Source of the DNA: Macrostomum hystrix
Lineage: Eukaryota > Animalia > Platyhelminthes
Assembly (NCBI GenBank): GCA_950097015.1
Contig: CATNEN010000038.1
Coordinates: 17,980,001 to 18,044,000 of the forward strand
DNA: 64,000 nt
Reading direction: 5' to 3'
Below, in pieces: positions 1 to 35,699 of this stretch. The notes beneath the pieces are model-generated. The model was not told where the DNA came from. It saw only the letters and a list, made by a program, of their open reading frames with translations, and did no database searches. A program made the position numbers and the translations under genes. Positions within the stretch are counted from its first letter, which is position 1; every line of letters begins with the position of its first letter.

Positions 1-1038
1 GCGATGCGTCGTCAGAGTCGACTACCTCGTCAATTTTTGCCTTCCCCATTGCGAGCAGCAGCTGTTTTAAGCTAGTCGGATCCTGTAGAAGCATTAATTT
101 TTTTTGTTTTATTGTTAGTTAAAATTTTCTTTTAATAGAAGGAATCCGAAAATACCTCGAAAACCGATTCATCCAAGAACTGCGACAGCCTGTCGAGAAT
201 GTCTGCACTGAAGCCGGTGCAACCGTGGGCAAGGCAAGCGCAGATGACCTTCCAGAGAATTGGCTTCAGTTTCATTTTCCACTCTTCGTTTTCCAATCTG
301 GAAAGGCAGATGTGCAGATCTTTCACGCGTGTTCATTTTGTACTGAGTCATTAGTTACTAGGCTTAGCAGCCAGTTCCCACTCTCTAAATAGTTAGCCAT
401 TGCCGCTGTATGGCCAAGCATAATCCTATCCAATTAGTTAATTTAGTTAATTAATTAGAGGTTGAGCTAAAGATTTCTAGTAGCTTTTGTCCTTTGGAAA
501 CCGTTGGTTCGTATTCCCATTGTTTTTTTCACCGCCCTTCTGGGCCACCCGCGGAATTTCTGTCAGTGAGTTCATTCCAGCAAATCGGAGAGTTCAAATG
601 AGCCCAGCCAATCGTATCGATGTTGTGACGTCGGCGTCTTCGCCGGACTTTATCGGAGTGTGCACAACGAACGAGAAATTCAGGACTCTCTTGGATAATA
701 GATTCCTTCTAGACTCAGGCATAAGAAATGAGACGAGACAAAACTTTAAAAAGTACAAAACTTATGATTAAATTATACCAGAACTGAAATTCATCTCACA
801 TGGGACCTCGCACGTGATCAATGAACCGATTCACACAGTTGTCTCCAGGAGAGTTCCTTCTGGGCCACTGTTTGTTCTCAGTCTTGTCGAACAGATCCCC
901 CATGGCTTGCATCAAAGCAATGACATCAGTTGCAGTCATGGCCTCGTGAGGAAAGTGCTTTCTGCAGTGATCTTGCACAGCATCGTCCGCATTTTCCGCA
1001 GTAGTTTGAAAATTTAGACTTCGAAAGTAGGCATCCAT
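1..1038 (-). CDS. 5' part (exons 1-3: 800-1038, 156-297, <1-82) of a third paralog of the helical-CC-DD-TIR-TIR gene; continues beyond the window's left edge
   Basis: Exon translations MDAYFRSLNFQT..RNSPG..RFIDHVRG, EEWKMKLKPILW..GFSADIL and DPTSLKQLLLA align with exons 1-3 of the copies at 11323 and 23371. GT/AG sites have the same phases. The C-terminal domains are not visible in this window. Confidence 0.85.
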
Positions 1039-1264: not shown

Positions 1265-1734
1265 CATTTTACTGGATTTCTAACCGATGACTCTACTGGG
1301 CTATGTGTAACTTGTGTGTATTCTAATGTCCACAAGAAAGGAAAATGACTGACGTAGGCTGTCGGCTTTGTGAGCGTAGAAATCACGGAACTCAAACTCT
1401 GGAATCTAAGTAGTTTTAATATATTTGGTACTGCTTGATTAACTGTCATTTAGGCGCAGAATGCTCATTCGACTATAAATACTCTTTATAGTGGAATATA
1501 AAATCATGAATCAGAAATAAATTAGATGGATTTTGTCTGCGACGATCGCAAAACAGTCGTCGCAAGACCATGTGTAAAGCATGTACATTGAAGGAGACAG
1601 AGATATCTACGATATAGTACTTTAAATTTTAGTGTGATTGAGAATATATGACGAATTTATGTATATCAATTATGTATAGTTTGATTAATTAGAATTTAGT
1701 CGATGGTATTACTCCTGAAGTATCAGCATTGAAA

Positions 1735-4700
1735 TTAAAGCAGCTCGCACGTCTTCGACCTCCCAGCAGCGCTATGAACCTTCGCCAGCTTCTCTCGCTT
1801 CTTTTCGCTCATCGGAGGTCCATGGTTCGAGATGCCACCATCATCGTCATCTGCCATTGAGTTTGTTGAGACATTGGTCGCGACTTCTGGCAAAAACTGC
1901 GTCAGTCTGGCATGGATCTCCTGGAACTTCTCTCCTCGCCACGTCAGCTGATCGTCCGCGTCCTTGTACATCTGGACGTAGATGAGCTGGGTGAGCGGCA
2001 TCGACATCGGACCCTCCGGAGGCCAGGCCATCTTCTCCAGCATCACTGGCACAATCGGCTTGCGGATGGCGTCAGCGAGACTCACCTCGCGCCTGCAGTT
2101 GGGCGAGGCGGCGTACTTGGGAGTGACGAAGGCCAGCAGAACGCTGCAGCCGCGAACGCCGCGGTCGATCTTCTCGTACAGCGAGTCGCCTCCGCCCATC
2201 TGGAAGATGTCCATCCAGCAGGTGAATCCCAGACTGCTGAGTCGCGAGTAGAGCGCCTTCACCTCTGTCTGCTTTGCCCACTGGTACGAGAGAAACACCT
2301 GACACGCTGCTTGAGGTGCAGCCGACTGTGCGGAGCTGTCACTTCCGCCGTCTTTGCCGGCCGACTTGTCGGTTCTGGCGTCCCCTTTCCTTTCCGGCAG
2401 CACGATGATCTCGTCAGCAATGGGCGGCTGCCACCAGTTTGCGTACTCCGCAGCCACCGAGTCATAGTCGGGCGCAACGGCCAACCGAATTTGAGCCAGC
2501 AGCTCTGAGAACTTGTCCGGCGGCCAGAACACTCCGCCGGCTGAGCCACCGGCCTTGCCACCACTCCGATCGAACATGCGGATGTACAGGTACTCTGTGA
2601 GCAGAGGACCCATGGCTCCCTCTGGAGGCCAGGACACTCGCTCCAGCTGCACAGGAATCAGGTGCTTGTTCAGCGACACCGACAAGTTCAGCTGCAATCG
2701 AGAAATCATGCATTTCAGCCAAATATGATTGTACTTTAGCACCTTTAGCACTCGTCATGACCGATCACTCACCTCTCGTCTGCAGTTGTCCGACTTTGAG
2801 TACTTCTCAGTCACGCACGCGATCACCACTTTTGCGGATCGAATTCCAGCATCGATGGCTGAGAACAGCTTGTCTCCGCCTCCCATCTGACCAATGTCCA
2901 TCCAGCAGCGATATCCGGCCTTCTCAAGGTGCTGCTTGAGCATCTTCACCTCCGCCTGATGCGCCCACTGGTAGCTGAGGAAGACGTTGCGAGGAGCCGT
3001 GAACTCGACCGGATCGTCCGATGCAGCCGACTCTGCAACCAAATGGGACGAATCATTTATTCAGACGACACCGCAACAGCAGCTCACGTGACACTCACCT
3101 GCGTTGAGAATGGACGCCTCGACTATGGCTGCTGCGTCGAGCCGATTCATCTCCTTGAGCTGCTGCAGCACTGCCTTGGACGCCTCTGCTGCTCTGTTGT
3201 TTGCGTAGAACTCAGCCAACAGACTCATGCACGGGTCTGGAGTCGTCGTCCATGCTCGAATGTCATCAGCTGTGAAGTTGAGCCTCTGAGCCAGCAGTCG
3301 CCAGTCAGTGTCGGACTCGGGATTCATCAGGCGCGAGACCTCGCGAGACCACGCGGGAGCCGCACTCAGAGTCTTCAGGATGCAGTTTAGGTGAAGAGCG
3401 ACTGCACTGGACTCGGAGTATGCTCAAAATGATGCAAATGACAGCTCACCTTCAGGTCGATCTCCTCCACCTTCTCGCCCAGCACTCCCACAGTCACATT
3501 CAGGTCGTCAACACGTCCTTCGGTGACCTCCACGCGTCCACGAACTTGACCGAGCTCGTCTCTGGTCTGATCCACGCGACCCGACACGTCGTCCACCTTG
3601 TGAGCGGTGTCGCTCAGGCCTCGCTCGAGTCCTCCGATCTTGCCGCTCTGCTCAGTGACCTGGCCTTCCAGACCGACCAGCGAGCGGTTCGCAATCACAT
3701 CGAGCAGGTGGTTGCAGGCGTCGAGCAGTGCGGGACTCGACTTCCACCGCTTGATGTCGGACTCTCGCTCGGCCAGCAGCTGCGGACTGTCAACTCCGAC
3801 GCGTCGCATCAGCGCGAGGCAGCCGGCGAGCTTGTCCGGAGCCGAGTCCAACGACAGGTGGTGGTTCACGATGTCACAGATGGCCGCCATTAGATGAGCA
3901 GTATCGAATTTGCACTTCTCGATGGTGTCGATTGCGTGAACAACAAGATTGATGTTGGATTTTGCGGTGGCTGTTAGAGGGTTCAGACAGTCATTCATGA
4001 CATGCTGTTGTGTTGCAGCAAGAGAGGCCAGTGCTGCCATGGACGGCACTTGGTGGTCTCCCTGCTTCTGCAGAATCTTCAGCAAGTAGTCTCGAAGGAA
4101 CTCTGGATGGTGTTTGCTGTTCAATTTGCAAGCATTGGTAATCAAATATGTAAGCTGACTATCGCTGTTTGGAACACCTTGAAATAAGTCAACCAAGTTC
4201 GGAATTTCGGCAGCCAAGTTATCCGGCATTTCTTCTTTTGAGCTGTTGTACAGATTGTCTGGAAAGATTAGCTCATAGACATGTAGGTTAACACTCGTGA
4301 TTCATAATAAAATGACGATGTGCAACTTACACAAAAGTCCCGCTGCTATTCCCGCATACAATTGTGGCTGTTTGTTTTTCGTTTTCTTGAAGGCTTCAAT
4401 TAGCTGCGGTAGGTGAGGAAGCGAAGGAAACACTGTTTCCGGGCTGTTTCCAAGGCACAAGCTGAGGCCCATTACGAGGCCCGTAGCGGAATCGGCCTTT
4501 GCGCTGCTTTGAAATTTATCGGCTGCCACAATGTACAAAGGAAGCAGCTCTTTGCTGACGTCAACTAGCTATGAAAAATTGGAAGGACGTGTGGGATCAG
4601 CATAAAATAAAGATAAGCATTTTAAGCAACTCATTTCCTACCTTTGCGGCCTGCTGGAATCCGGTAGTCAGACTAATTATAACAGAATGTGCAATTTGGC

Positions 4701-7700
4701 CTTCGATAGACATTGTGTCTTGCCCAGAATCGTCCACGGTTGCCACTTCACCAGCGAGACAGGCTTCAAGCAGGCTGTATAGTTGTTTCACTTTGCTGCA
4801 AATTACTTCCGGTGAGTTGCTTCTGAAAGTCCATTGATTTTTTGCAGCTGATCGATTACATTTTCCGTTTACTACTTTTAATGAAGCATTGCATGCATTA
4901 TACGAGTTTCACGGCTAGAGACATGAAAATACTGTCGTCTGAGATGCAGCAGAATATTTTTTGGACATTGTGCCGCTCTTAGGGTTTCTGTTTTACGAAT
5001 TTCCGAAAAACGAATGTTAGTGTGCAAGAACTATTACTGAACCTGACTGAATCTGCGAGGCGACAACACAAAATTGGCTGAGGATCTTCGGGCGGGGTGA
5101 TAGACCCGGAAGTCCCAAAAGGTTACAGATATCCTGGTTACAGAAAACTGAGACTCGTTTTTCATCTTCAAATTAGTTCTTAATCAGTAGAAAGATCATC
5201 TCAGATGTTTTTATTCAGACTTAATTGGCGATTCGGTTTTATTGATATTTTAGGAGATGCAGAAACGAAAATTATGTGGGTATTTGAAATACCCCCCAAA
5301 TGTCTTTCTACTTTTAAAGCCTTTAAAGTTTTCCGTGTTGGAGCCCCTATCACTTCTACACTGTACACTGGGTTTGATTATTGAAATGATAGTTATTTCG
5401 TACGTTATTAAAATTCTTACACAACGGTGCTGACGAAGTTCAATGGAATATTTAGATAAACAGAGCCTCGGTGCAAAGTCTCTAGAGTAATGATCGGTTG
5501 TTGAACGTATTCTGTCAGTGCGTCGAGAACTGCGGGCAGCTGGTCGATCATGTCGGACCAGTTGAACATGTCCGCTTGCCAGCCACTGACGAGAATAGTC
5601 AAACTGATGCTTTTCACAGCTCGGAGCATGATTCCGAGTAGCTTGAGCTGCATTGGTTTCTGCCTGAGCATAGTCTTGCCTGGCGATTGGCTGAAATGTT
5701 TTTGGTTTGCTAGACGCGAAAATTGGAAGCGAAACAGCTTGAGAAGATGCATCTTTTGTTTAAATCCAGTAGATTGTACATCCATATACTCACTAAATGC
5801 TCATAATCAGCCTGTTAAATAGATCGCTAGAGTTGGCATCAATTGAAGGATCCGCAGACAAGCGCTTCGCTTCCTCATCTGCCAGCAGTTTGGCTAGGTA
5901 AGTGTCCATGAATAGCAACAGGGCCGGACGGAACGTCTGCAGTGTGTTGATTCAATCCGTACTTCAGTTGATGCTTTGTGAGCAGATTTTTACGGTAACG
6001 TTAGTATAATAATTTCCATTGACAAAAAGAACGACTTTATAGTGTGTGTTTTGTCAGCACCAATCCACAAGCTGCGGTTCTGGTGAATCCTTCATCTCTC
6101 ATGCCGTAACAATCAATTATTAAAATGCACTAAAGCCTGACAACAAAGTATATTTCAAGTATATTTAAAGGAATCCTGAAACTGAGAAAATTTACCGTGG
6201 TCTATCAAATTAGAGCGAATAACGACTGTCACATTTTTTGGAAAACACTTATTATGCGAGTATTGCCTTAATCTCACAACTGGGACGTTGATGCGCTAAC
6301 AGTTTATAGGAGCTCGATTTATATTCAACTGTAGCTAGTAGGGGGTGAGTAGCAGAGCGGTTAACGTGTTTGTCCTTTCGCACAAGGTCCCTGAGCTCGA
6401 TTCCGCGGCGAGGTCACATTCATTTGGGGGTGCAGCCGCTGAGAGAAGTCTAGAGGCTTGTCGTGCAATTGGTGCCATTAAAGGCCAACCCACAAGGTAC
6501 AGTGAAGTGTACGCTGCCTGACGATGAGAAATTCAAGGCAGATGTACACACCTGTATGAGTGTCTGCTTGCGCTCAGCTGTCTGAGTGCGTGTGTGTGAG
6601 GTACAGCTTTTGGAAAAACATTATCCAATGCCTGAGCTGCTCAAAATAGCTATTTTTACATATGCGTCTTGCTTTATCATCCAATAATATACACGCGGAC
6701 TTTCCATCCAATCAACGCGAACTAAGAGCATGCTATTTAATCAGACGCTGAGCGCAAGAGTAAAGTGCATCCTTTTTTCCCATCCAGACTAGCTATCAGG
6801 CTTCTATGACAACCCTGATATAGCTTTACTCTTCCTGTCTAACAGGACTGTTGAATTCTAAACTCTGAGAATTTGAGAGAACTCAAATCTGCAGCATTCG
6901 AGTAACCGCTCCTACTTGACCGGCAGACCTCCAGGCTCCAGTCTTCGGAGACTCACTTAAGATAAGTCGGACAATACTCTTGTTGTCTAATTAATATCTT
7001 TGCGTGATCCAACATCCATGCGTATTTGACAACATTGCTGATTGCGAAATATAACGTCTAAGTTGAAGGGTACAACATCAAGGTAAACAGTCGAACCGGC
7101 CTCCTGTCTCCTTACTCAATAATGGGAGAGATAACTAGACCCTTAGTCCTAGACCTAGACCTAGACCTAGACCTAGTTCTAGTACTATTTTTAATTATTT
7201 CATGTGCCCAGGAGTCAGCGGAATAGCCTCCTCGCTGGCTGTGGTTCTAGTGTCACCAAATGATGTGCCTTTGTCCGCAGCCCTCCTGCAATTATTTTTA
7301 ATATATAATATTATTGCTCATAGCTCGTATTTTAGGAGCTTCTTACTTTTAACTGAGATCGGAAGTTTGAATCCCAGTCGAATGATGACAACTTGCTTTG
7401 TCATTTTAATGATGACAATAGGCCCTATCAAATTATATTCCACTTTTTTAACTCAAATGGTCCGGATTCGGTTGATTCAAAAGCTTACCTCCGAGTCCTT
7501 CTGAATCAACTTCTGATTCTGGCTGTCGAGAAACATCGATCTAAAGTACTGGTCGAACTCCTCAGCAGACACCGACAGCAGGTCCAGGTAGACAGGCATG
7601 CATTTGCACAGCTCTTGAACGCTGAGCACCAATTTGGGTAAAAATCTGCGGAAAATCTGTTCGCGAATGTCTCTGAGGAATTTCTGACAAGCCGGCAGCT

Positions 7701-10700
7701 TTTCGCCATTTTCCTCAATGAACGGCTTCAGCAGAAACTGAATGGTGTCTCGGTTAGTCAAAGCTTCATCGATGCTTGGAATATTCTACGTGGAAAATGG
7801 ATTTAATTAACAGGCAATCAGTTTAGTGAGTTTAGTGAGAGGCATTTTTTAATGCTCAATCGAGACAAGGGTTAACGGCGGAGTGGCATCGCGTCAAACG
7901 GTTCAAAAGGGTCCCCGAGCTCGAATCCTGCCTGCCTGACGATTAAGAAATTCAGACAGAATGTATGTCAGACAGACATACCCGTGTGTATGTGTGATTA
8001 AAAGGTCAGTTGATTGCGTGGACTTCCTTGCTGCTGTGGGTCAGCTGAGGGGCGAGTGGGTCAGCGGCTAACGTCGCTGCCTCGCACTCCAAATGACGCT
8101 AGTTCGATTCACCCTTCAAGTCACGATTAATTTCGGTACTTGTTGGGGGGGGTTTGGACAGTAGCGACCGGCGGAGGTGCACCATATTTCGTGCAATCAA
8201 AGCTTGAAATAATAGCTTCGCTCCTACCTTCTGTGTGCCTGTTCTGCGTTGTATGAGTTATGTGCGTTGGCGCTGGGGCGTTAGACCTTGCGGGGGGTGG
8301 CTGGAGGGCGGGTGTACACCGCCGCGCGCTCCCTGGAATTCCGTCAGCGCGATTGGATAAGTGTACACTCATCACCCGGCCCCCCCTGAGGACTGATTTC
8401 TTATCAGCCTTCCGCCCCGGCCTGGTCTGCTCTGTGCGTGTGGGGCTGGGGTGGGGGACACTGCTGCCTATTCTGGGTGCCTCCTGCCCTCCCCGGCTGG
8501 TCTGTGCTGTTGTGTGTGGTGCCTGCTCAGGGGAGGCGGCGCGATGGGCGCTAAAGCGCCTAGTTCGCCGGTCTGGGGGCGTGCCGCTCCGTCGCTTGTG
8601 CGACAAGTGCCCCGGGCCCCCTGCAGATAGATAGATAGAGAGTGGGTCAGCTGTCCCCCGAAATGATGCAATAAAGACCTCAGCCCTGTTCAAATCTTAA
8701 ATTTTTTGCTCGATTAAAAACCAAGGATCGCGTTTATTTTACGCGTCAAATAACGCACCGGAAGGCCCATCTTGGTTCGAATAGCGCATTCGTGCAGCCG
8801 CACAAGCAAGTATTTTCCTCGATCAAGCAGCCGCTCATTGTCAGTATTGCTAGACAAAAGGCGCAGGCAGATTCTATTCGCATCGTTCACTAAACCGGTG
8901 AAATCCACGGCTTTTAAATCGCTGGAATATGAAAATAACAAGTTTAATCAGTCTGCAGTGTTTGCGGTGTTTGTGGCCGCCAGTCTGTTGTATCAGGCCG
9001 GTTTGGTTGTCTCGGCCTTGGCCTCGCCCTCTCACCCTTCTCCCCCGTCCCTGCTCTGTGTGCCCTGAGCCGCCACCTGATTGGTGGCTGGGCGCGGGAG
9101 TTGTCTGTAAATCCTTACCCCAGCCCTGCGTAGCTTTGCCCGTCCACCCGGCCAGCCCGTACAACTCTACCCCTCCCTGCGCGCTGTTGGCTTGACTTTG
9201 GTAGTTTTTGCACCGCCTTCCCTGTCTGCCCCCACCCCCAGATAGGTGTCCTATTTTTTCATTGTCTGCCCATGCCGGGGCACCTCTCGTGCGCTCCTGC
9301 GATAGCGTTTGACCTTTACGATTCGAGCCGCAAAGACGGCTGTTACCGCGAGGACTCAATTTATTTCATGAAATCAAATAAATACACCGAACTCGTCAGA
9401 GAAGCCACCTGCGTCATCTTCCGTTCCGACTGGTAAGCGCTGCATTCGTGTTTTTCTTTTCGGAGTGCCAGGTCCGTACTGTACAATCTTACTTAGCAGT
9501 ACTGCGTCCTGACGCATAGCTCAGTTTACTTAATGCTACTGTGGGCGGGTATCCCGAACTGACCACAGTCACTACACTTACTAGGAGCTTTAATTCAAAC
9601 TTACTCAACACTTACTCAACTGCCGCCCCAAGCCGGATCAGCATCATGCCCAGAACGTCTGCCGTCTTCTTGGGTAGCGCTTTTCCATGTTGACATTCAA
9701 CCAGATCGTCGAATGTCCTTATCAGAGATTGCATGAACGATTGGTCACTCGAGTACATCTGAAATGTGTTTAATGGGAAAAGTCGTTTAAAACATAGTAA
9801 AGTTTTGTGCTCCAGCAATTAGCTAAGCAGCCTACGTGAATGATGGAACTGCTCAGCGGTCGGTCTACGTAGTAAGCGAGCTTTCGAACCAGCGCTGCCA
9901 TGACATTCTCTCTGAACTGCGCAGTCGCTTCATTTGTGGCGTCACAGGTAGCCAAATTGCTCAAGTAGAGCGCTTTCACTGAGTCTGGTATGTGGTCAAA
10001 AAATATCTTCTCGCTGAAATTCAATGTTTAAAAATTGCTTTATGTGTTCGCAAGGGACTCTGCATGGCAAATAAAACGTAGGTTAAACGACTGAATAAGT
10101 TTAGGCTATGCCCAGAAAAGTTGCAGTTAGCTTGGCCTCAGTTTGGGGGGTGGGTGGCAGAGTGGTCTAACGCGTTTGCCTCTCGCATCAAGGTCCCTGA
10201 GCTCGATATCGCGGCGAGGCCAAATTTATTTGGGGGGCACAGCCGCGGAGAGAAGGCTTGGGGGCTTGTCGTGCAATTTACGCCCTGAGGGCCAACCTCC
10301 AAGGCACAGTGAAGTGTACGCTGCCTGACGATGAGAAAGTCAGGGCAGATGTAAACACCTGTGTGAGCGTATGCCTGCGTACGGTATCTGTGTGCGTGTG
10401 TGCTCAGGAGTCAGCGAAATGGGCAGAATTGCCTCTTCGCTGGCTGCGGGTCTACTGACACTAAATGATGTGCCATTGCCCGAAGCCCTCCAGTAAATGT
10501 TACAATTATTGGTCTCAATTCGTTTTAGGTACGATAATAATTTCTGCAAAGAGTGATGCTGATTCCGATTTATAATTCAGAGTTCGAACCTGAAATTAGA
10601 CAGCTTGAATGTCACAGTCAGGTCGTTAAGCCGAGATACCGCGTAAGCGTGATCTTTCTGATCAGCCGCCTCGGCCGGTGCCTCGATGCGCAAGTCTTGG

Positions 10701-11323
10701 ACAGCTAGGAGAAGCTTTCTGGCGCACTCGGGGTCCTTTTGTGAGCATGAAAAGTAAACGAATAATGTACTTTTTATTCAACATGAAATGGATCAACAAT
10801 ATTTTTTGCTATAAATTGAGGACACACCTACAGAAGGGAAATTAACGTATCTCACCTCATACTTGCCTCGGTCATCTTTTCCAAGCTGTGTCAGGTCACT
10901 TAGCACATCTACTGTGAATCCGTTCAGCTTTGGAGTCAAGGTGCACACGCAGTAGGTGTCCCATAGGATCTGTCGCAGCTCTGTCTGCCACTTCTCATTC
11001 ATATGCCTAAATTTGAGTTTTTCAAGTTAGGTTGCTTGTCTGCCAAGGTTCAGCTAAAAACTAACTTTTTAGTTTTCTATCTCTTACATGACATCTCGAA
11101 TATGCACTAGGAACCGATTCACAATGTAGTGACCAGGAGAATTTCGTGCCGGCAGGGGCTGGCTGACGTCCGAGAAGCGCTCTCGAATGGCTAGGAGCAG
11201 TTTGACAATGTCCTCCTGACATAATGACACCGAAGGAAATCTGCTGCCCAGCTCGTCAAGCACTTTGTTGTTCAGTTGGGCATCGCTGGTTAGCAAATCA
11301 AGCGATTTAAAGTAAACATCCAT
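1735..11323 (-). CDS. Copy 1: about 1481-aa protein, ARM/HEAT-like helical N-terminus - coiled coil - death domain - TIR - TIR - polybasic CaaX tail. 15 exons: 11088-11323, 10856-11006, 10590-10735, 9836-10013, 9616-9758, 8759-8921, 7489-7785, 5794-5936, 5421-5690, 4642-4822, 4331-4568, 3450-4258, 3099-3372, 2773-3032, 1735-2691
   Basis: All junctions are GT-AG and phase-compatible (total 4446 nt). Two TIR_2-like motifs (VFLSYQW..CWMDI.QMGGGD.L...ID.G.R...S.NCRRE...WPPEG). Death-domain motif DWRLLAQRLNF..LKEMNRLDAA. Heptad coiled coil. Ends KTCELL*. Every exon has a counterpart in copy 2. Confidence 0.88.
6341..7295 (+). mobile_element. SINE family A copy split by a ~600 bp insertion (head 6341-6598, tail 7203-7295)
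   Basis: The two halves are consecutive parts of the 10145-10510 consensus. The insert carries (CCTAGA)n at about 7148-7177. Confidence 0.7.
8048..8641 (+). mobile_element. SINE-like element B (~590 bp) with 12-bp target-site duplication, nested in a degenerate SINE A
   Basis: GTGGGTCAGCTG at 8036-8047 and 8642-8653. A-box-like TGGGTCAGCGG and B-box GTTCGATTC near the 5' end. (AGAT)n tail. Confidence 0.7.
10145..10510 (+). mobile_element. tRNA-derived SINE family A, full-length
   Basis: A box TGGCAGAGTGG, B-box-like GCTCGATATC, conserved body shared with about 10 other copies in the window, AT-rich tail. Confidence 0.85.
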
Positions 11324-11519
11324 GCAAGCTGAAGTAAGAGTACGGGATGGCAGTTTTGGAATTTCATTTTTCGATTTTTAGGTTTTTAGCAGCATTTTAA
11401 ACTAGAAACGTAATAGGTAAAAACGTAGTCGGAAAATACCCATGCAGTTCAAGGCATACGAGTAATACTAGACAATACCCAGTCCTGTCCTATACATAAG
11501 ACACACAAGAGGTCCTGCT

Positions 11520-13615
11520 GAAGGCACAACAGAAGTCAATACCCTAGCTGAAGACACAACGGAAGTCGATACATTAGCTAGAGGCACAACAGAAGTCGAT
11601 ACACTAGCTAGAGGCACAACAGAATTCGATACCTTAGCTAGAGGCACAACAGAAGTCGATACACTAGCTGAGGCACAACAGAAGTCAATACCTTAGCTAG
11701 AGACACAACAGAAGTCGATACCTTAGCTAGAGACACAACAGAAGTCAATACCCTAGCTGAAGACACAACAGAAGTCAATACCCTAGCTGAGGCACAACAG
11801 AAGTCGATACATTAGCTGAAGACACAACAGAAGTCGATACACTAGCTAAAGGTACAACAGAAGTCGATACATTGGCTAGAGGCACAACAGAAGTCGATAC
11901 ATTAGCTAGAGGCACAACAGAAGTCGATACACTAGCTAGAGGCACAACAGAAGTCGATACACTAGCTAGAGGCACAACAGAAGTCGATACATTAGCTGAG
12001 GCACAACAGAAGTCGATACACTAGCTGAGGCACAACAGAAGTCGATACATTAGCTGAGGCACAACAGAAGTCGATACATTAGCTGAGGCACAACAGAAGT
12101 CGATACACTAGCTAGAGGCACAACAGATGTCGATACATTAGCTAGAGGCACAACAGAAGTCAATACCCTAGCTGAAGACACAACAGAAGTCAATACCCTA
12201 GCTGAGGCACAACAGAAGTCGATACATTAGCTGAAGACACAACAGAAGTCGATACACTAGCTAAAGGTACAACAGAAGTCGATACATAAGCTAGAGGCAC
12301 AACAGAAGTCGATACACTAGCTAGAGGCACAACAGAAGTCGATACATTAGCTGAGGCACAACAGAAGTCGATACACTAGCTGAGGCACAACAGAAGTCGA
12401 TACATTAGCTGAGGCACAACAGAAGTCGATACATTAGCTGAGGCACAACAGAAGTCGATACACTAGCTAGAGGCACAACAGATGTCGATACATTAGCTAG
12501 AGGCACAACAGAAGTCAATACCCTAGCTAGAGGCACAACTGAAGTCGATACACTAGCTAGAGGCACAACAGAAGTCGATACACTAGCTAGAGGCACAACA
12601 GAAGTCGATACATTAGCTGAGGCACAACAGAAGTCAATACACTAGCTGAAGACACAACAGAAGTCGATACACTAGCTAAAGGCACAACAGAAGTCGATAC
12701 ACTAGCTAGAGGCACAACAGAAGTAAATACCCTAGCTAAAAGCACAACAGAAGTCGATACATTAGCTAGAGGCACAACAGAAGTAAATACCCTAGCTAGA
12801 GACACAACAGAAGTCGATACCCTAGCTAAAAGCACAACTGAAGTCGATACATTAGCTAAAAGCACAACAGAAGTAAATACCCTAGCTAGAGACACAACAG
12901 AAGTCGATACATTAGCTGAGGCACAACAGAAGTCGATACACTAGCTAGAGGCACAACAGAAGTCGATACACTAGCTAGAGGCACAACAGAAGTCGATACA
13001 TTAGCTGAGGCACAACAGAAGTCAATACACTAGCTGAAGACACAACAGAAGTCGATACACTAGCTAAAGGCACAACAGAAGTCGATACACTAGCTAGAGG
13101 CACAACAGAAGTAAATACCCTAGCTAAAAGCACAACAGAAGTCGATACATTAGCTAGAGGCACAACAGAAGTAAATACCCTAGCTAGAGACACAACAGAA
13201 GTCGATACCCTAGCTAAAAGCACAACAGAAGTCGATACATTAGCTAAAAGCACAACAGAAGTAAATACCCTAGCTAGAGACACAACAGAAGTAAATACCC
13301 TAGCTAGAGACACAACAGAAGTAAATACCCTAGCTAGAGGCACAACTGAAGTCGATACATTAGCTAGAGGCACAACAGAAGTCAATACACTAGCTAGAGG
13401 CACAACAGAAGTCAATACACTAGCTAGAGGCACAACAGAAGTAAATACCCTAGCTAAAAGCACAACAGAAGTCAATACACTAGCTAGAGGCACAACAGAA
13501 GTCAATACACTAGCTAGAGGCACAACAGAAGTCAATACCCTAGCTAAAAGCACAACAGAAGTCAATACACTAGCTAGAGGCACAACAGAAGTCAATACCC
13601 TAGCTGAGGCACAAC
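11520..13615. repeat. Minisatellite, 29-30 bp unit (GAGGCACAACAGAAGTCGATACACTAGCTA), between TIR gene copies 2 and 1
   Basis: About 70 tandem units directly visible. They explain the repetitive VVPLASVSTS ORFs. Confidence 0.97.
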
Positions 13616-14701
13616 CCAGGACAATTACGTGCCATAATTTATAAAACCGTTTGACCCTTTGTAACTACGATCATTTTGTCATGTCTGATTATTAATGTCA
13701 TTAATAAAGATGCCATCATCATTAAGTTTCGCTTTAAATGCTACTACTAGTACGCAAATACCTGACGCTTAATAAGAAACAACAAGAAACGGAACAAAAT
13801 TGATTCCAAACCTCAAGATAGTTTTTATATTCATTAGCTCGAAAATGTATTGTAAAATAGTTTAAACGATTCGAAAAATAGAAGCAGTTTCAAATAAAAA
13901 TAGATTATAAGACCATATTTGATAGTCAGGAGACATCGTCACAATGTTTAGCTCTTCGTTGCTTTCGTCAATTGTCATGCAATAATTCTCACACAGCCTC
14001 AACGGAAAGTACAGGAACACCAGCACTAGTAGCGCATAACAGTTTCATTTATTTTGGAGCCCGATTTCATGACACAAATTATTAAAATTCTCGTAATGTT
14101 ACTCTTGATTTTGATGTCTCTTCAAGGCTGCTAATGCTCACAAAAGACAATAACATAGGAACTAAATATATAGAGATAGCTATAGGAATTATTATACTAG
14201 CAAATTATTACTAAAAAGCTAACAATAGACTGACAATAAAACGTGGGATATACTTGAAAAAAACTGAATTGGGCATCATTTAAACAATATTATTACTTCA
14301 GTATCTAAAAACAAACTTTAGGTCGCCGTTAAAGTGCACTAAAGACTAATGTAGAGAAAAAAAGCTTAAAACCAACGTTAGTTCTATCACTAAAAGTAGA
14401 AAGTCGGATTCGACCACGTACGAGGTATATATAAATGTCTTCATACGAGGTCATAATTGTAAAAATAATCAAAGAATAAATAAATAAGGAAAAAATATAT
14501 ACGATTGTAAATCATGATAAAAATCATTAGTACGCTCGGATACTGTAGATTTTCTAACAGGTGAGTAAATATATTCAGAATTTTAGAGAAGGACTTGTTT
14601 ATGACGAGCTAAAACATGAGGAATCTTGAAACAATTAACTTGAAGGACCTATTGTTAAAATATGTCTAAACACTAGAACTGAACTGATGCACAGATCGGC
14701 A

Positions 14702-17700
14702 TCACAGCAGCTCGCACGTCTTCGACCGCCCAGCAGCGCTATGAACTCTGGCCAGCTTCTCTCGCTTCTTCTCACTCAGAGGGGGTCGCTGGTTCGAACC
14801 GCCACCGGAACCAGTCGGGTTGCCAGCAGTGATGGTCGTGGAGACCTCTTTGATGCTTACGCTTTCTTTAACAGCCGCTTCGGGCACAAACTGCGTCAGT
14901 CTGGCATGGATCTCCTGGAACTTCTCTCCTCGCCACGTCAGCTGATCGTCCGCGTCCTTGTACATCTGGACGTAGATGAGCTGGGTGAGCGGCATCGACA
15001 TCGGACCCTCCGGAGGCCAGGCCATCTTCTCCAGCATCACTGGCACAATCGGCTTGCGGATGGCGTCAGCGAGACTCACCTCGCGCCTGCAGTTGGGCGA
15101 GGCGGCGTACTTGGGAGTGACGAAGGCCAGCAGAACGCTGCAGCCGCGAACGCCGCGGTCGATCTTCTCGTACAGCGAGTCGCCTCCGCCCATCTGGAAG
15201 ATGTCCATCCAGCAGGTGAATCCCAGACTGCTGAGTCGCGAGTAGAGCGCCTTCACCTCTGTCTGCTTTGCCCACTGGTACGAGAGAAACACCTGACACG
15301 CTGCTTGAGGTGCAGCCGACTGTGCGGAGCTGTCACTTCCGCCGTCTTTGCCGGCCGACTTGTCGGTTCTGGCGTCCCCCTTCCTTTCCGGCAGCACGAT
15401 GATCTCGTCAGCAATGGGCGGCTGCCACCAGTTTGCGTACTCCGCAGCCACCGAGTCATAGTCGGGCGCAACGGCCAACCGAATTTGAGCCAGCAGCTCT
15501 GAGAACTTGTCCGGCGGCCAGAACACTCCGCCGGCTGAGCCACCGGCCTTGCCACCACTCCGATCGAACATGCGGATGTACAGGTACTCTGTGAGCAGAG
15601 GACCCATGGCTCCCTCTGGAGGCCAGGACACTCGCTCCAGCTGCACAGGAATCAGGTGCTTGTTCAGCGACACCGACAAGTTCAGCTGCAATCGAGAAAT
15701 CATGCATTTCAGCCAAATATGATTGTACTTTAGCACCTTTAGCACTCGTCATGACCGATCACTCACCTCTCGTCTGCAGTTGTCCGACTTTGAGTACTTC
15801 TCAGTCACGCACGCGATCACCACTTTTGCGGATCGAATTCCAGCATCGATGGCTGAGAACAGCTTGTCTCCGCCTCCCATCTGACCAATGTCCATCCAGC
15901 AGCGATATCCGGCCTTCTCAAGGTGCTGCTTGAGCATCTTCACCTCCGCCTGATGCGCCCACTGGTAGCTGAGGAAGACGTTGCGAGGAGCCGTGAACTC
16001 GACCGGATCGTCCGATGCAGCCGACTCTGCAACCAAATGGGACGAATCATTTATTCAGACGACACCGCAACAGCAGCTCACGTGACACTCACCTGCGTTG
16101 AGAATGGACGCCTCGACTATGGCTGCTGCGTCGAGCCGATTCATCTCCTTGAGCTGCTGCAGCACTGCCTTGGACGCCTCTGCTGCTCTGTTGTTTGCGT
16201 AGAACTCAGCCAACAGACTCATGCACGGGTCCGGAGTCGTCGTCCATGCTCGAATGTCATCAGCTGTGAAGTTGAGCCTCTGAGCCAGCAGTCGCCAGTC
16301 AGTGTCGGACTCCGGATTCATCAGGCGCGAGACCTCGCGAGACCACGCGGGAGCCGCACTCAGAGTCTTCAGGATGCAGTTTAGGTGAAGAGCGACTGCA
16401 CTGGACTCGGAGTATGCTCAAAATGATGCAAATGACAGCTCACCTTCAGGTCGATCTCCTCCACCTTCTCGCCCAGCACTCCCACAGTCACATTCAGGTC
16501 GTCAACACGTCCTTCGGTGACCTCCACGCGTCCACGAACTTGACCGAGCTCGTCTCTGGTCTGATCCACGCGACCCGACACGTCGTCCACCTTGTGAGCG
16601 GTGTCGCTCAGGCCTCGCTCGAGTCCTCCGATCTTGCCGCTCTGCTCAGTGACCTGGCCTTCCAGACCGACCAGCGAGCGGTTCGCAATCACATCGAGCA
16701 GGTGGTTGCAGGCGTCGAGCAGTGCGGGACTCGACTTCCACCGCTTGATGTCGGACTCTCGCTCGGCCAGCAGCTGCGGACTGTCAACTCCGACGCGTCG
16801 CATCAGCGCGAGGCAGCCGGCGAGCTTGTCCGGAGCCGAGTCCAACGACAGGTGGTGGTTCACGATGTCACAGATGGCCGCCATTAGCCTCGCCGCGCCG
16901 AAGCTGCCCTTGTCCATTGTATTAATCACTAGAGCAACGAGGTCGATGTTGGCCTTTGCAGTTTGTATAAGCTGATCTAAAACCCCGGTCATTGTCTGCG
17001 GCTGATTCTCCGCTAGGGCGGCGAGCCCTGTTAGTGCCATAGCGGCGAACTGTCCCTGCAGGATGCTCAGAAGATAGTCTCGCATCTGCTCAGCACAATG
17101 TCTGCTGTTGTTTTTGCAGACTATATTGACGACGCTGACTAGTTGTACCTGTACGTGGCTTGCTTCTCGGGCAATCTCAATCAACTGCGCTATCTGGGTG
17201 GCCAGCTCATCTGGTACATTAGCATTGGATGCCTGCTGCAAGCTCTCTGCGAATTTTGGTGTAGAAATCTTGTATGTTTAATTTTTGCTGTAAGTGTATT
17301 TGTACATCTATTCTGCTAATTAATTTCATGTTTGAGTATTCGGATTTTATAATTGAGAATACTCACGGAGCAAGCCAGCGAGCATGGGAGTGAACATCTG
17401 ATCATTAGCGGACTTCCGCTCTTCTAGGTACTGCAACAGGAGCGGCAGGTGGCGCAGAAACTGGAACACAGTGTCGGGGCTCATGCCAAGGCAGCTGGTC
17501 AGGCCGACCATGATGGAGCTCATGCCTGATTCCGGATTTTCAGTTGTCTTTCTACACATTGTGATGTACAATGGGTACAACACTTTGTTGATGGGTAGCA
17601 TCTAGAAAAAAGTTTTTAACGGCCAATGAGTATGTTCAAACACTACTTTGAAGTCTAATGTTTTAGCAAAATATTTATGATCTACTCTAGCCGCACCGTT

Positions 17701-20700
17701 TGCACATTTGCGGCAGACATGAGATTGCTGAGCAGGTTAATGACCACGAGTCCCTCAGTAGAAATCATGTCTGAACCGCTCATCAAGGTCACCACGAGGT
17801 CCTGCTTGAGGCACGCCTCTGTGATTCTACGAATGCTCTCCAGACTGCTGCAGACTGTCTGTGGAGCATCTTTGCTGCAAGTTTTAAATAATGAGAATTG
17901 AGAGTTGGTAATATCACTAGTTGCTTGGCGCTAAGAACATGCTTCCCTGACCCTTGCACGAATTGCACTGTAGAGAATTTGAAATTGTATATAGAAGTAA
18001 CTGTTGTGAATTGACTGACTGAATGCTAATTTACGCATACTGCCACTATGAGTAGTGCAGTGAGGAAGCTAGTAGTTTCTAGAACCTTCTGTAGCCAGAA
18101 TATTCTAGAACCTTCTATAGTCCGTGTTTTCTAGAACTTTCGATTTAACATATCAGCTACCTATAAATATACGGACACAAAGCTATCACAAAAAGGATAA
18201 CTTCTCAATTTGGAATCTGCCAACAAATCCGTTGTTCCCTTCGTTCACTACATAACAGTAACAAGTGCAGTTAATATTTTAATACCTGTAGCATGAATAG
18301 TGAAGGCATGAGAACTGTGAGAACATTGTGAACATTAAGAATCGGATTAGTCTACTATTATAATTAAGCAGAATAGCAGCACAATACGAGGATGATAAAA
18401 TTAATTCTTAGGTGACACTTGAAAATATTTTAATGAGAACTTAATGAATTTTATTTTTATGTGCAATGAAAGGCAGATGATATGATACCAGCTAGGCTCA
18501 AAAACCCAAGATAACGTAACGTTTAAAGCTACAAACATTCGCTGCTCACATCATGAAGCTGATAAAGTCGAGCGGTATAACTGCAAAACCAATGCCGTAG
18601 TGAACGCTCTCAATGGTGGTTATCGGATTCGCTAAGAATTCCTCCAGCATGTCCAGATTTTCCTGAAACTTATCGCGAAGAATCGGCCAGTTAAAGGTCT
18701 CCTTATCGATGCCACGAATGGCTCCAAGTAGGCAGAGACTTCGTTTGGCGACCATCTTGCGCATTGTTTCGAAAAGCTTTAGCTGAGTTTCCTTGCTGTG
18801 TACCATCTTCTTGCCGGGCGACTTGCTAAAATATTAAGCGTTTTCGTTAACAGTTCGAAGCAAATAGTTCCGGGGCAAACGAAAGTTTAATGCGCACTTG
18901 AATTCACGAGTACCAAGTTCATAAGAGATATAACGGTGAGATGTTCTCAAGCATGAGTTCCACCGAAATGAGACGTGATTAGAGATACTGGAGAGCCACA
19001 CAAAGACGTTCTCAATAATTAGGATCACAATGTGACGCTTTTTAAGAACTTGTGTCAACGCAATGAGACGTGCAGCTTAGTTATTAGTGTGTCACGGTGT
19101 GAAATTCTCACGAATTAGAGCGCAACAATGCGACATTCTCACTAATTTGAGCGCCACAATGAGACATTCTTAAGAGCTTCAGTACTACGAGTACAACGAG
19201 CATGGCTTCCGGAATTAAAGCATCACAATAGGACTTTTTTATTTTTGCAACGCAATGATCGAAATGTGCGCTTAGTTATTAGTATGTCACGGTGAGACAT
19301 TTTCACGAATTAGAGCGCAGCAATGAGACATCTCAAGAGTTTGAGTGCTACAACGAGAATTTTCTCAGGAATTAAAGCGCAACAATGTGACGCTATCAAG
19401 AGTTAGCTTCACAGTGCGACAGAATACACACCAGGAATAAAATGATCTTTATTAGATTGATAGTTACGCAATGAATTCCATCAGTTATTTTCCTAAATAT
19501 TGAGGGGTAGATCGAATATACACTTACAATAGATTTTCGACCATGTCTTCAAAGACGGACGCCAGTTTGCGAACTGGGCCGTAAACCAGAGGGTCGCCCT
19601 GATTTGTCTCCGGCACAGAGCTATCCAACTTGATCAGAGTTTCCGCACACTCGTCAATGAATAGTAAAAATGCCGATTGGAATTTCTGAAAGTATTTTCA
19701 GTCTTATTTAACGCTCGTGTTTATATTTGGGTGTGTCAATGTTGACGGTGGCCTTTCTACTCGTATATTTTACTTTCAAAAAATGCTGGAACAAAGGCTA
19801 CTTATTGTGGCGTGCCTCGCTTTCATCCTCACTTCATCCTCAACTTCATCCTCGTCGTCAGTATAGATAATATAGCATTCGTCTTCTAAACCAGTGCCAA
19901 TTATCGGGATCAAAGCTAGCTGTCACCGAAGGCATGTTTTCAGATAAATCAATGCAAAATATGGAACTGTTTGTGCCGGACTCCAGTCATGGAAGCAGTG
20001 AAAACATCTTGTACTAAGGGTTTAAACTAAAAAAAAAATTTCTAAGGGTTGGATCAACTGTGCAGTTCAATGGATCAATGCTTACTAAACTGTACATTGC
20101 ACGACAACAGGCTGATGCGTACATCTGGAGAGAGCTGAGGCAGAAACGGAAAGAAATTTTTATGGGGTGGCGTCGGCGTGAAGTCCTTGCCGAAGGAGCA
20201 GCTACCGCAAACTATGCGTATGACTGCTGTGAGATTGAGAAGAAATAGTCTATGGCCTGCAGGGCCTCCCGCAAGCTACGGCAGTATAATGAAAACAAGC
20301 CCGCAATTCAAGCGTTATTGACATGTTTGTATGCGTATGGTCAGATGTCAAAGGTTTTCCATCAGAAATATATGAGTTTTGGCCATAGATATTACAACAG
20401 TCATTGATGAAAAACGTTAGACAATGCCCTAAACTGGCTTCTATTTTTTAAATAGAAATGGATCCACTCCCTAAGCTGCTTCGTAGTCTGTAGGTCAAAT
20501 AAAAAGACCTGGAAGTACTTTAACTTGCCTAGCACATCCTAGACAAATTATCTACCAGCTTTTCTTGGGCAAAAGGCTTACCGCTGCGCTCAACTGTATG
20601 ACCTTCCGCTTGTTGCTTTCAAAGTACATGCGGCGAATGCTTTCAACGAATTGGGCTGTGGAGACTGGCAGTTGCTTAAGGTACAGTGGCATGCACTTAG

Positions 20701-26433: not shown

Positions 26434-28158
26434 CTAGCTTTTTTGCCCGTTGTTTTTGGGGCAGAAATGTAAAGCAAAGCAGTAAGAAATTCACGTCTCT
26501 GTATTAACTTTATAGTGAAGGTCACCATTTATTTATTTACTGCATTAATGAAAAGTGAAGAGTTTGTTTAAGGGCGTTTTAAGTAAAAAATAAGTGAAAA
26601 GTTTGTCCAAACAGCCCCCTCTTGATTACTTCTTTAGAAACATGTCTCTTAGCCACTCCTCTATACAGTCAGTGGCAGATCCAGGAATTTTGTTTTGGGG
26701 CGGTCTGTCAGGGGAGCGCCATGAGAATCACAGAGGGGGTGCCAGCGGCCGAAAAAGGGCGCCAGGAGCCAAGAAAGGGCGCCAGCGGCTGAAAAACGGG
26801 AGCCAGCGGCTGAAAAAGGGGCGCCAGCGGCCGAAAAGGGGCGCCAGTGCTGCGACTGGCGCCCCTGGTGGGGGCATCTTATTCCCATGATTAAAATTTA
26901 GGGGGGCGACTGCCCCCCCGCCCCCCCCTAAATCTGCCTCTGTATACAGTATGCATGTACACGCGTATACATAAGGAAAATAGCCATGACATAACAATAA
27001 CAATGTCAAAGAAACAAAATTAAACTGTTTCAGAGTTCAGAGTTAGACAGGTCAAGGTCAATTCGTGACTACTTTTCTATTAATTGCTTGCGAGTCACCT
27101 CAAGGCCTGGGGATACACCACATTCTTCGTTCTTCCCCTTGGTACGAAAATGAATAGGCCCGCTGGAGTTCCAACACGGGAGCAGGCGACATAAAGCTGC
27201 CCATGCGAGAAGCAAGGAGTCTCCAGGTTGATGCCAGCCACCTTCAGCGACTGTCCCTGAGCCTTGTTAATAGTCATCGCAAAGCACACTCTCACAGGGA
27301 ACTGCAGTCGCTTGAACTGAAATGGCAGGTCCGTGGGGATAATTGGAATCCGGGGAACGAACACAGACTCTCCTCTGCCAGATCCAGTCATTATCGTGGC
27401 CTCAATCACGTGTGGGAAGAGCCGCCTGACTATCAGTCTGGTGCCGTTACACAGCCTTGGCGCATTCAGGTTGCGGAGGAGCATAATTGGTGCCCCAACT
27501 TTCAGCTGCAAGTTGTGCGATGGAGTTCCAGGAGGATCTAGAGAGTTCAGAAACTCAACAGGATACTCCACAGCGGTGTCATCAGTCAACGTTGTATCAA
27601 TTGACTTGTAGGTGAAAACTGCACCTGCCAACTCCTGAAGCAGTTGGTAGTTAATTTCGTTGGCGGCATCATTTCTAGGACACAGAATTGCCCTCTCTGA
27701 CAGCCCGGGCTTCGGCGCCCGGGGAAGGGAGGGGGTGGCTGTAATAAAATTTGGCCCGCAGAGTGGCGGAGGGGAGTTGGGGTGGCTGTCCTCGGAAAAC
27801 AAAAAGTGACTCACTTTGAGATGATGCAGCTTTGCTCTGGATTGAGTAGAGATGTTCAAAATTGACAGCATTGTTGGAAAACATGTAAAGTGTAAGTGGA
27901 TCAAATTTGGAGAAAATCTGACAAAGTGGGGCGACGATATGTCGAATTGAGTGATTTTTTGACGATTTTTGAGCAGTTTTTTGCACTTTTGAGCAGGAAG
28001 GAAATGATTTTTCGGGAATTTGAGTAGCCTATTGCACTCAGCGTAGGTGGTTTTAGGTATGTGCAAAGTTTGGTGCGATTTGGTTGAGCGGTTTCGGCGT
28101 CTATAAAGACAAAAGGTTGCACACACACAGACAGAGCTTTCACTTTTATATATATAGA
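26434..28158 (-). mobile_element. Non-autonomous Helitron retaining the C-terminal PIF1-like helicase fragment (27095-~27715)
   Basis: 5' end A|TCTATATATATAAAA at 28158. 3' hairpin TGCCCCAAAAACAACGGGCA followed by CTAG|T at 26434. ORF has Helitron helicase motifs RAILCPRN, LKVGAPIMLLRNL..LCNGTRL, FAMTINKAQGQSL, FSHGQLYVACSRV. Confidence 0.88.
26670..26942. mobile_element. hAT-type MITE nested in the Helitron
   Basis: Imperfect TIRs CAGTGGCAGATCCAGG / CAGAGGCAGATTTAGG. 8-bp TSD TATACAGT at 26662-26669 and 26943-26950. Internal GCGCCAGCGGCTGAAAAA repeats. Confidence 0.85.
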
Positions 28159-34975: not shown

Positions 34976-35044
34976 AGAACAGATGTTGCTAAAGGCACAG
35001 AGATACTCTTCTAGATATTCTTAAACTGGTAAGAAGTGCAAAAG

Positions 35045-35699
35045 GCCTCTGCCTCTGCCTCTGCCTCCTCTGCCTCCTCTGCCTCTGCCTCCTCTGCCTC
35101 CTCTGTCTCCTCTGCCTCCTCTGCCTCTGCCTCCTCTGCCTCCTCTGCCTCTGCCTCCTCTGCCTCCTCTGCCTCCTCTGCCTCCTCTGCCTCTGCCTCC
35201 TCTGCCTCTGCCTCCTCTGCCTCTGCCTCCTCTGCCTCCTCTGCCTCCTCTGCCTCCTCTGCCTCTGCCTCCTCTGCCTCTGCCTCCTCTGCCTCCTCTG
35301 CCTCCTCTGCCTCTGCCTCCTCTGCCTCCTCTGCCTCTGCCTCCTCTGCCTCCTCTGCCTCTGCCTCCTCTGCCTCCTCTGCCTCCTCTGCCTCTGCCTC
35401 CTCTGCCTCCTCTGCCTCTGCCTCCTCTGCCTCCTCTGCCTCCTCTGCCTCCTCTGCCTCCTCTGCCTCCTCTGCCTCTGCCTCCTCTGCCTCCTCTGCC
35501 TCCTCTGCCTCCTCTGCCTCTACCTCCTCTGCCTCCTCTGCCTCCTCTGCCTCCTCTGCCTCTGCCTCCTCTGCCTCCTCTGCCTCCTCTGCCTCTGCCT
35601 CCTCTGCCTCCTCTGCCTCCTCTGCCTCCGCTGCCTCCTCTGCCTCCTCTGCCTCCTCTGCCTCCTCTGCCTCTGCCTCTTATGCCTCCTCTGCCTCCT
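35045..35699. repeat. Pyrimidine-rich simple repeat of mixed GCCTCT / GCCTCCTCT units
   Basis: About 650 bp. Gives the spurious poly-Ser/Ala ORF. Confidence 0.97.

Follow-up and report, generated by a model that had tools for sequence, protein, structure and literature searches.

We analysed a window of 64,000 nucleotides (nt) from the flatworm Macrostomum hystrix (positions 17,980,001-18,044,000 of contig CATNEN010000038.1, here C38), on the minus strand of which two neighbouring genes, D and E, encode proteins with one Death domain and two TIR domains and have in common a nearly identical tract of 2.0 kb. Both belong to a tandem array of five genes, named A to E, and the tract appears to be the shared 'constant' 3' module of this array, comprising the end of a helical region, a coiled coil, the Death domain and the two TIR domains. 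The features of the locus are listed below by position; coordinates of up to five digits refer to the window, and eight-digit ones to the contig.

769-1038, minus strand: gene C (N-terminal type 1), its first conserved exon; the gene otherwise lies to the left of the window
1735-11323, minus strand: gene D, from its first conserved exon (11084-11323) to its stop codon TAA (1735-1737), modelled from tblastx colinearity with gene E, tblastn with the M. lignano protein P0001, and open reading frames (ORFs)
1735-1893, minus strand: tail of gene D beyond the D-E tract; a variable linker comes first, followed by conserved polybasic sequence with CELL at its end
1894-3893, minus strand: homogenised 2.0-kb tract, gene D copy (N-terminal type 2), with 3/2000 mismatches to 14888-16887
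1894-2691, minus strand: tract part of the last exon, 266 codons, with the rest of TIR domain 1, a linker and TIR domain 2 (PF13676, ~1954-2298; Pfam E 2.2e-24)
2692-2772, minus strand: intron of 81 nt, GT..AG, identical in D and E; of the 22 variable sites of the five copies, 2699 and 2732 fall here
2773-3032, minus strand: exon of 260 nt with the first half of TIR domain 1 (PF13676; Pfam E 1.3e-19)
3033-3098, minus strand: intron of 66 nt, GT..AG, phase 1, identical in D and E
3099-3372, minus strand: Death-domain exon of 274 nt (Pfam PF00531, ~3115-3318)
3373-3449, minus strand: intron of 77 nt, GT..AG, phase 0, identical in D and E
3450-3893, minus strand: tract part of the boundary exon, 148 codons, with the last helical segment and the coiled coil (~3459-3635)
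11491-13600, no strand assigned: 30-nt minisatellite in the interval that separates gene D's start from gene E's end, at least 42 copies, from the repeat search
14702-23371, minus strand: gene E, with its first conserved exon at 23132-23371, orthologue of M. lignano A0A1I8I651 (P0001)
14702-14887, minus strand: tail of gene E, of the beta type, common to gene C
14888-16887, minus strand: homogenised 2.0-kb tract, gene E copy (N-terminal type 3), from the repeat search and a base-by-base comparison

Genes D and E are colinear over their whole length, with N-terminal exons that are 28-55% identical (tblastx). The protein encoded in the window was compared exon by exon, while the comparisons at the level of the family made use of public full-length proteins. 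Pfam searches of the separate exon ORFs recognise a Death domain (PF00531, E 7.9e-8; 32.8 bits, with the cutoff at 22.6) and, C-terminal to it, two TIR domains (TIR_2, PF13676); the coiled coil, at residues 199-257 of the boundary exon, has sub-threshold matches to coiled-coil families only. The N-terminal helical part amounts to about 830 residues. Eight N-terminal exon ORFs were submitted to Pfam and none gave a match above cutoff; in the first exon a hydrophobic leader is not apparent by eye.

The two TIR domains are internal duplicates, with 61.6% amino-acid identity over 73 residues. The hexamer GTGAGT serves as splice donor after 'CRRE' in TIR1 (2767-2772, minus strand) and is coding at the matching site of TIR2 (2085-2090), where the protein reads CRREVSL. 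TIR2 (1894-2340) has its nearest solved structures, by sequence, among TIR proteins of bacterial type, one of them an NAD+ hydrolase (E 2e-4 to 4e-4); the alignments cover the first half of the domain only, animal adaptor TIRs are not among the nearest, and we make no claim of catalysis. Outside the D-E tract, both tails (1735-1815 and 14702-14782, minus strand) close with polybasic sequence and CELL, and over this end (1734-1839 versus 14701-14806) they are 85% identical, with the same amino acid in 30 of 35 codons and the same base at 12 of 16 four-fold sites. A similar basic stretch followed by C-x-x-[L/I] closes the relatives P0007, P0008, P0017, P0019, P0047, P0109 and P0129, and members with such an end include ones from amphioxus, an annelid, a clam, an abalone, a scallop and a sea urchin. 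The C-terminal CELL or C-x-x-[L/I], which we take to be a CaaX box, suggests a conserved prenylation-type anchor at the C-termini of the family.

At a fixed offset of 12994, the D and E copies of the tract align without gaps and differ at three of 2000 positions (2386, 3238 and 3319), and the nearest mismatches beyond the tract fall at 1893 and 3894. An earlier note on this DNA had pointed out this match between 1894-3893 and 14888-16887, with about three substitutions; it located the first two correctly and put the third near 3320, one base from its true position. All three are synonymous third-position changes (AAA/AAG, CCA/CCG and CCC/CCG) and, as the note had said, leave the protein unchanged; the three introns (81, 66 and 77 bp) indeed are letter-identical between the two genes. 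The borders are sharp. On the left, identity per 100 nt rises in one step from 37 (1801-1900) to 100; on the right it drops from 100 through 95 and 58 to 36 over 3801-4100, so that the sliding-window comparison shows a stepwise and not a gradual fall at both ends. Both borders lie mid-exon, where the note had seen them: at the 5' side of the gene the proteins read ...DTAH/LMAAICD in D and ...GAAR/LMAAICD in E (the slash marks the border), and at the 3' side the tract stops after RLTQF. The 3' limit coincides with the start of an indel-rich linker, and the 5' limit lies in the exon without an evident signal. The suggestion that the tract is confined to the signalling domains does not hold strictly, as its 5' end falls in the helical region, about 73 codons upstream of the coiled coil.

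Of the 311 four-fold sites within the tract, 309 are identical between D and E, as against 25 of 71 in the N-terminal exons. Chance is thereby ruled out as the source of the identity, and it follows that selection at the protein level cannot yield it either, a point that had been argued in advance from the identical introns. Over 524 aligned codons the N-terminal exons of D and E have 36.1% amino-acid and 49.9% nucleotide identity, and their four-fold sites are saturated.

Five full-length copies of the tract (query 1-2000) are found in the M. hystrix genome (220,453,370 bases in 42 contigs), all in tandem on C38 and all on the minus strand, D and E being those within the window. The genes are direct repeats 7.7-13 kb apart. 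With an N-terminal exon as query, matches in the genome are restricted to genes A to E. The search of the organism's own genome revealed no donor copies outside the array; its sole extra match, of 218 nt at 69%, represents a TIR match with 51% amino-acid identity. In the aligned flanks, the 5' parts of the genes fall into three types: A and C (~99% alike, type 1), B and D (~99% alike, type 2), and E by itself (type 3). The 3' tails are of two types, with A, B and D on the one hand and C and E on the other. The same tract is present in the paralogue to the left of the window, a point that the note had proposed to check; there are five genes in all, however, and the borders vary with the pair that is compared. 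For E against the other copies they are 1894-3893, between type 1 and type 2 copies the shared tract is 11 nt longer on the 5' side, and A is like B and D over 1722-3904, stop codon included.

Pairwise, the five tracts differ at 3 to 17 of 2000 positions without any indel: D and E differ at three sites, B and C also at three, and the remaining pairs at 11 to 17. The 22 variable sites comprise 15 synonymous, five nonsynonymous and two intronic ones, and because synonymous sites so outnumber nonsynonymous ones the module is under purifying selection. The single-nucleotide polymorphisms (SNPs) form a mosaic. At ten sites B equals C and D equals E while the two pairs differ from one another; seven of these split the copies as ABC/DE and three as BC/ADE, and sites private to one tract are present in A, B and D.

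A comparison of the two halves of the array by blastn uncovered a large duplication. The stretch 17955162-17968407 is 98.96% identical to 17974233-17987448 over 13,253 nt, the similarity carries on through the 30-nt minisatellite at 96.8%, and 17973641-17976242 matches 17994286-17996887 at 99.42% over 2,602 nt. In other words, what lies between the A tract and the C tract recurs between the C tract and the E tract, and the homology ends at the start of the A tract and at the end of the E tract. The two duplicated units measure 19.1 kb and 20.6 kb; they differ in length because the minisatellite has a shorter counterpart between B and C. Gene C has the front of A and the tail of E, so that the type 1 N-terminus occurs with both tail types (A and C). 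A duplication of 19-20.6 kb with such a chimera is what one would expect from unequal crossover of A-type with E-type tracts in an ancestral array of three genes.

The positional counterparts in this duplication differ in the tract at 11 (A-C), 15 (B-D) and 11 (C-E) sites, and to a like degree the non-tract flanks of the duplicated units have diverged, by ~0.74% (68 mismatches in ~9,250 nt, by our own arithmetic). The neighbours B and C, and D and E, differ at only three sites each where ~15 would be expected, which implies transfers between these neighbours after the duplication; by our arithmetic the Poisson chance of three or fewer differences is then ~3e-4. Since it rests on individual SNPs in an assembly polished with short reads, this step is less secure than the tract itself.

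The age of the gene types was assessed by comparison with the congener M. lignano, on proteins only. A library search with the boundary exon retrieved one close relative, P0001 (A0A1I8I651), and the search with the module gave the M. lignano entries P0001 and P0019, which are 97% identical throughout and both of the E type; types 1 and 2 were not found in M. lignano by this module search, limited to proteins of 0.55-1.75x the query length. By tblastn, P0001 matches the N-terminal exons of E at 55-79%, and those of A/C and B/D at 25-35%. The N-terminal segments of gene E are 64.8% identical to P0019 over 593 aligned residues, as compared with 36-47% between E and its neighbours. Just upstream of the border, the same exon has 43/109 identical residues between D and E, 47/112 between C and D, and 51/109 between C and E. 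As E is closer to its M. lignano orthologue than to its neighbours, the three N-terminal types predate the split between M. hystrix and M. lignano. The modules of the two species are identical at 523 of 586 residues (89.2%, with 63 residues different), yet the five M. hystrix modules differ among themselves by 0-5 residues only; homogenisation thus took place in the M. hystrix lineage, after the split from M. lignano.

PMC6836662 names a family, ecTIR-DC family 6, for which it credits Gerdol et al. 2017, and describes it as having a long N-terminal region with ARM-like repeats, a Death domain at the centre and a pair of TIR domains, and as occurring in invertebrates only. By sequence, the five genes of the array probably belong to this family, with which they have in common the long N-terminus, the central Death domain and the two TIRs; they depart from the description in that their N-terminal exons have no ARM match in Pfam at threshold. 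We would describe the layout of the family as an ARM-like helical N-terminus, Death, TIR, TIR, a variable linker and a polybasic CaaX tail, where 'helical/ARM-like' rests on PMC6836662 and on one sub-threshold match to Adaptin_N in a Haliotis homologue.

With the M. lignano module as query, 167 proteins were found at E<=1e-20, and the 120 listed were taken for comparison across the family. These best 120 of 167 relatives carry the same Death and TIR Pfam set in ~850-1700 residues and are spread over molluscs, annelids, a nemertean, amphioxus, hemichordates and echinoderms; listed members from molluscs, annelids, amphioxus and echinoderms share 45-57% identity with the module. Leaving aside the hybrid Branchiostoma rows and one unlabelled amphioxus-like protein, N-termini below 65% identity are combined with modules of at least 97% identity in 16 of 121 pairs from the same species, as against two of 6305 pairs from different species, and those two join very close species (Biomphalaria pfeifferi with B. 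glabrata, and Mytilus galloprovincialis with M. edulis). Where N-termini are 20-35% identical, module identity reaches at most 90.5% between species (n=1133) and 100% within species. Four paralogues of Dimorphilus have modules that are 100% identical and N-termini that are 26-47% identical; they bear near-consecutive gene numbers, in the cluster DgyrCDS8667-8671, and lie on contigs of equal stated size, and the homogenised pairs of Ruditapes, Mizuhopecten and Argopecten likewise are each on contigs of equal stated size. In 13 pairs the limits of the identical block could be compared. Its start lies 22-114 residues ahead of the Death-exon motif (318 in Mytilus edulis) and its end 41-66 residues past the last WPPxG motif (117 in one Dimorphilus pair), at the onset of the variable linker; the M. 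hystrix counterparts of these distances are ~152 and ~43 residues by our own count. One of the 13, the Aplysia pair, deviates in that its block stops before the last WPPxG motif.

Trees of 16 scallop proteins give incongruent pictures for the two parts. In the N-terminal tree, two orthologous types each bring together proteins of different species (support 98-100), while in the module tree the Mizuhopecten pair and the Argopecten pair each cluster within their own species (support 97-99); approximately unbiased (AU) tests reject the opposite groupings (p 1.6e-4, 4e-4 and 2e-71). At the level of the protein, homogenisation of the module alone recurs in one annelid (Dimorphilus), in five bivalves (scallops, clams and mussels) and in three gastropods. 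Shared constant exons as the source of the identical modules in these animals were considered and rejected, because divergent tails follow the identical block within the same proteins; the proteins also have separate gene identifiers. In the literature searched, which took in neither Gerdol et al. 2017 nor the supplementary files of PMC10468722, we found neither a description of the flatworm array or its homogenised module, nor one of a recurrent, module-restricted homogenisation of the family across phyla.

We attribute the tract, with a probability of about 0.85, to interlocus gene conversion together with unequal crossover among tandem paralogues; the process itself is a known one, that of classical concerted evolution. 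Recent ectopic conversion or module swapping had been proposed in the earlier note, and this proposal is supported by the identical introns and synonymous sites, the ancient flanks and the older split of the types, its swapping component being documented by the duplication with the chimeric gene C. A break in one module would be repaired with the module of a neighbouring paralogue as template, in repeated events of non-allelic conversion. Such copying would reach only as far as the sequences pair, and since the copied stretch extends only where sequences still pair, the homogenised block would confine later events to itself. Conversion tracts would stop where homology collapses: on the 5' side inside the exon of the helical region, and on the 3' side at the indel-rich linker. 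Occasional resolution as a crossover would give rise to duplications or deletions and to chimeric genes; at this locus an unequal crossover on the homology of the shared tract would have duplicated 19-20.6 kb, from A tract to E tract, and so created gene C.

A number of points weigh against this reading. Donor and direction of transfer are not readable from one genome. The evidence is an assembly and not reads, and where copies are ~99% alike, polishing with short reads can smear the SNPs that distinguish them. It is conceivable that the 19-kb duplication was wrongly assembled, with a leftover haplotype joined in the wrong place. For the other phyla the comparison covers proteins and so does not extend to introns and synonymous sites, and the groupings put to the AU tests were defined with the trees already in view. 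Finally, the GC content at third codon positions (GC3) is 0.75 in the tract versus 0.56 and 0.64 in the N-terminal exons; nevertheless, a footprint of GC-biased conversion is not demonstrated, because the tract introns (42-50% GC) are no GC-richer than the surrounding non-coding DNA (42-46%).

Concerted evolution could also come about by repeated unequal crossovers within the module, without any non-reciprocal conversion. Each crossover of this kind swaps all sequence on one side of the break and alters the copy number, and one event is on record here, the 19-20.6-kb duplication with its ends in the tract and its chimeric product; the pairing of the type 1 N-terminus with either tail is the outcome expected of crossover within the module. 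However, the identical block of D and E has diverged sequence on both sides, which calls for two exchanges and is operationally a conversion, and the SNPs shared by B with C and by D with E arose after the duplication without a change in array structure. We therefore regard crossovers alone as an unlikely origin of the tract.

Less probable again is an artefact, in which the reads of one module would have served to build or polish the others, or haplotypes would have been joined in tandem. According to the Methods of PMC10468722, the assembly was made from PacBio reads with canu, purged of haplotigs, and polished with Arrow and Pilon; short-read polishing and haplotig purging both lend the idea some substance, as copies that are 99.2-99.85% alike are hard to polish correctly. 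Against it, 2 kb are well within the length of a PacBio read and each copy has unique flanks. The copies are distinguished by structured differences (the ABC/DE and BC/ADE splits and the private sites in A, B and D) in place of a single consensus, and polishing cannot lift ~50% identity to 99.85%. Moreover, the independently assembled M. lignano protein carries the same module at 89%, and independent assemblies of other phyla show the same pattern at the protein level. The least credible account is that the genes are recent whole-gene duplicates whose N-terminal halves and surrounding non-coding DNA diverge extremely fast while the module has not yet changed. Diversifying selection acting on a sensor domain would be in keeping with N-termini that vary next to a module that does not; but the four-fold sites of the N-terminal exons are saturated, the introns there are unalignable, and the step in identity falls within one exon. 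Nor does such haste agree with the greater likeness of the gene E N-terminus to M. lignano than to its own neighbours, or with 63 amino-acid differences in the module between the species against 0-5 among the paralogues. We consider this account highly improbable.

Textbook cases of interlocus conversion are the human gamma-globin genes HBG1/HBG2, RHD/RHCE and the red and green opsins. The array resembles them in its sharp tract that includes introns and synonymous sites, in its linked paralogues of the same orientation, in its older flanks and in the accompanying unequal crossover. Unlike in those cases, five genes of three deeply diverged types are involved (36% N-terminal amino-acid identity), the tract spans a whole multi-domain signalling cassette, and the pattern of the family recurs in other phyla. 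In the class I genes of the major histocompatibility complex (MHC) the 3' exons are homogenised within species while the peptide-binding exons are diverse, and homogenisation is likewise restricted to domains in the paired Siglec receptors. Here too a variable part adjoins a part homogenised within the species, and the trees of the two parts are incongruent; the difference is that the flatworm genes encode Death/TIR proteins of a putatively cytosolic type, in which the homogenised part is the predicted signalling end. Clustered protocadherins and UGT1A, which are clusters of variable and constant exons, arrive at a comparable end product, namely many N-terminal parts with one identical C-terminal module. 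Unlike these, each gene of the array has its own physical copy of the module (five in all), and within each of the family proteins from other species, divergent sequence flanks the identical block on either side, an arrangement that shared constant exons cannot produce. The combination of Death and TIR domains is that of MyD88, and a member from a sea urchin is named 'MyD88-like protein L1' by its source; the array protein differs in its helical N-terminus of ~830 residues, its coiled coil, its two TIRs and its CaaX tail, and in having a TIR that is closest by sequence to bacterial-type TIR_2 among solved structures (E ~2e-4) rather than to MyD88.

Some further features of the window may be mentioned. 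A tandem array of great regularity, with a unit of 22 nt, is situated at 20835-21472 in what is presumably an intron in the N-terminal part of gene E; it has 20 overlapping copies of 220 nt that are up to 97% alike. A 41-nt tandem repeat at 29378-30090 overlaps a plus-strand ORF of 217 amino acids made of repeated 'HPPHSRHW.QGSPDTHLTPDTGIKVPQTPTSLQTL' units. The minus-strand ORF at 27095-28126 (343 amino acids) has a C-terminal part that, judged by eye, resembles the end of a PIF1/Helitron-type helicase, a likeness that relies on what we take to be the PIF1/Helitron motifs. At 35036-35719, a plus-strand ORF of 227 amino acids consists of nearly all Ser/Ala repeats in a GC-skewed stretch. Two adjoining ORFs of the minus strand, resembling C-type lectins (57723-58547 and 59758-60546, ~270 amino acids), differ at their ends and have long identical peptide runs in common, e.g. 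around 'WCDANRECAKLGAELLTN' and 'DPDGPWHPTDPNNQQQDCVMFSNGNGNQGLMDKFC'; this pair may be another conversion tract.

The array provides a very clean example of interlocus gene conversion with unequal crossover, and it calls for caution with gene trees and annotation in Macrostomum, where trees of the module mislead on the age of the genes. The recurrence of module-only homogenisation, in the flatworm at the DNA level and elsewhere at the protein level, marks out a conserved organisation, 'variable N-terminus / constant signalling cassette', in an uncharacterised family of Death/TIR proteins. The uniformity of the module may be favoured or merely tolerated. A testable idea is that the paralogues may need identical Death/TIR modules, e.g. 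for co-assembly. In its widest form, ecTIR-DC family 6 would be a bilaterian-wide system of 'many sensors, one signalling module', in which linked paralogues whose helical N-termini have been different since ancient times are selected for an identical coiled-coil/Death/TIR/TIR cassette, kept uniform independently by conversion in flatworms, annelids and molluscs, possibly because the paralogues may co-assemble into one Death/TIR signalling oligomer; we put this forward tentatively, as a proposal that could well prove wrong. If true, conversion would be the DNA-level counterpart of the shared constant exons of the protocadherins and UGT1A. In any case the locus offers comparative immunologists a place to study how diversity of sensors and uniformity of signalling coexist.

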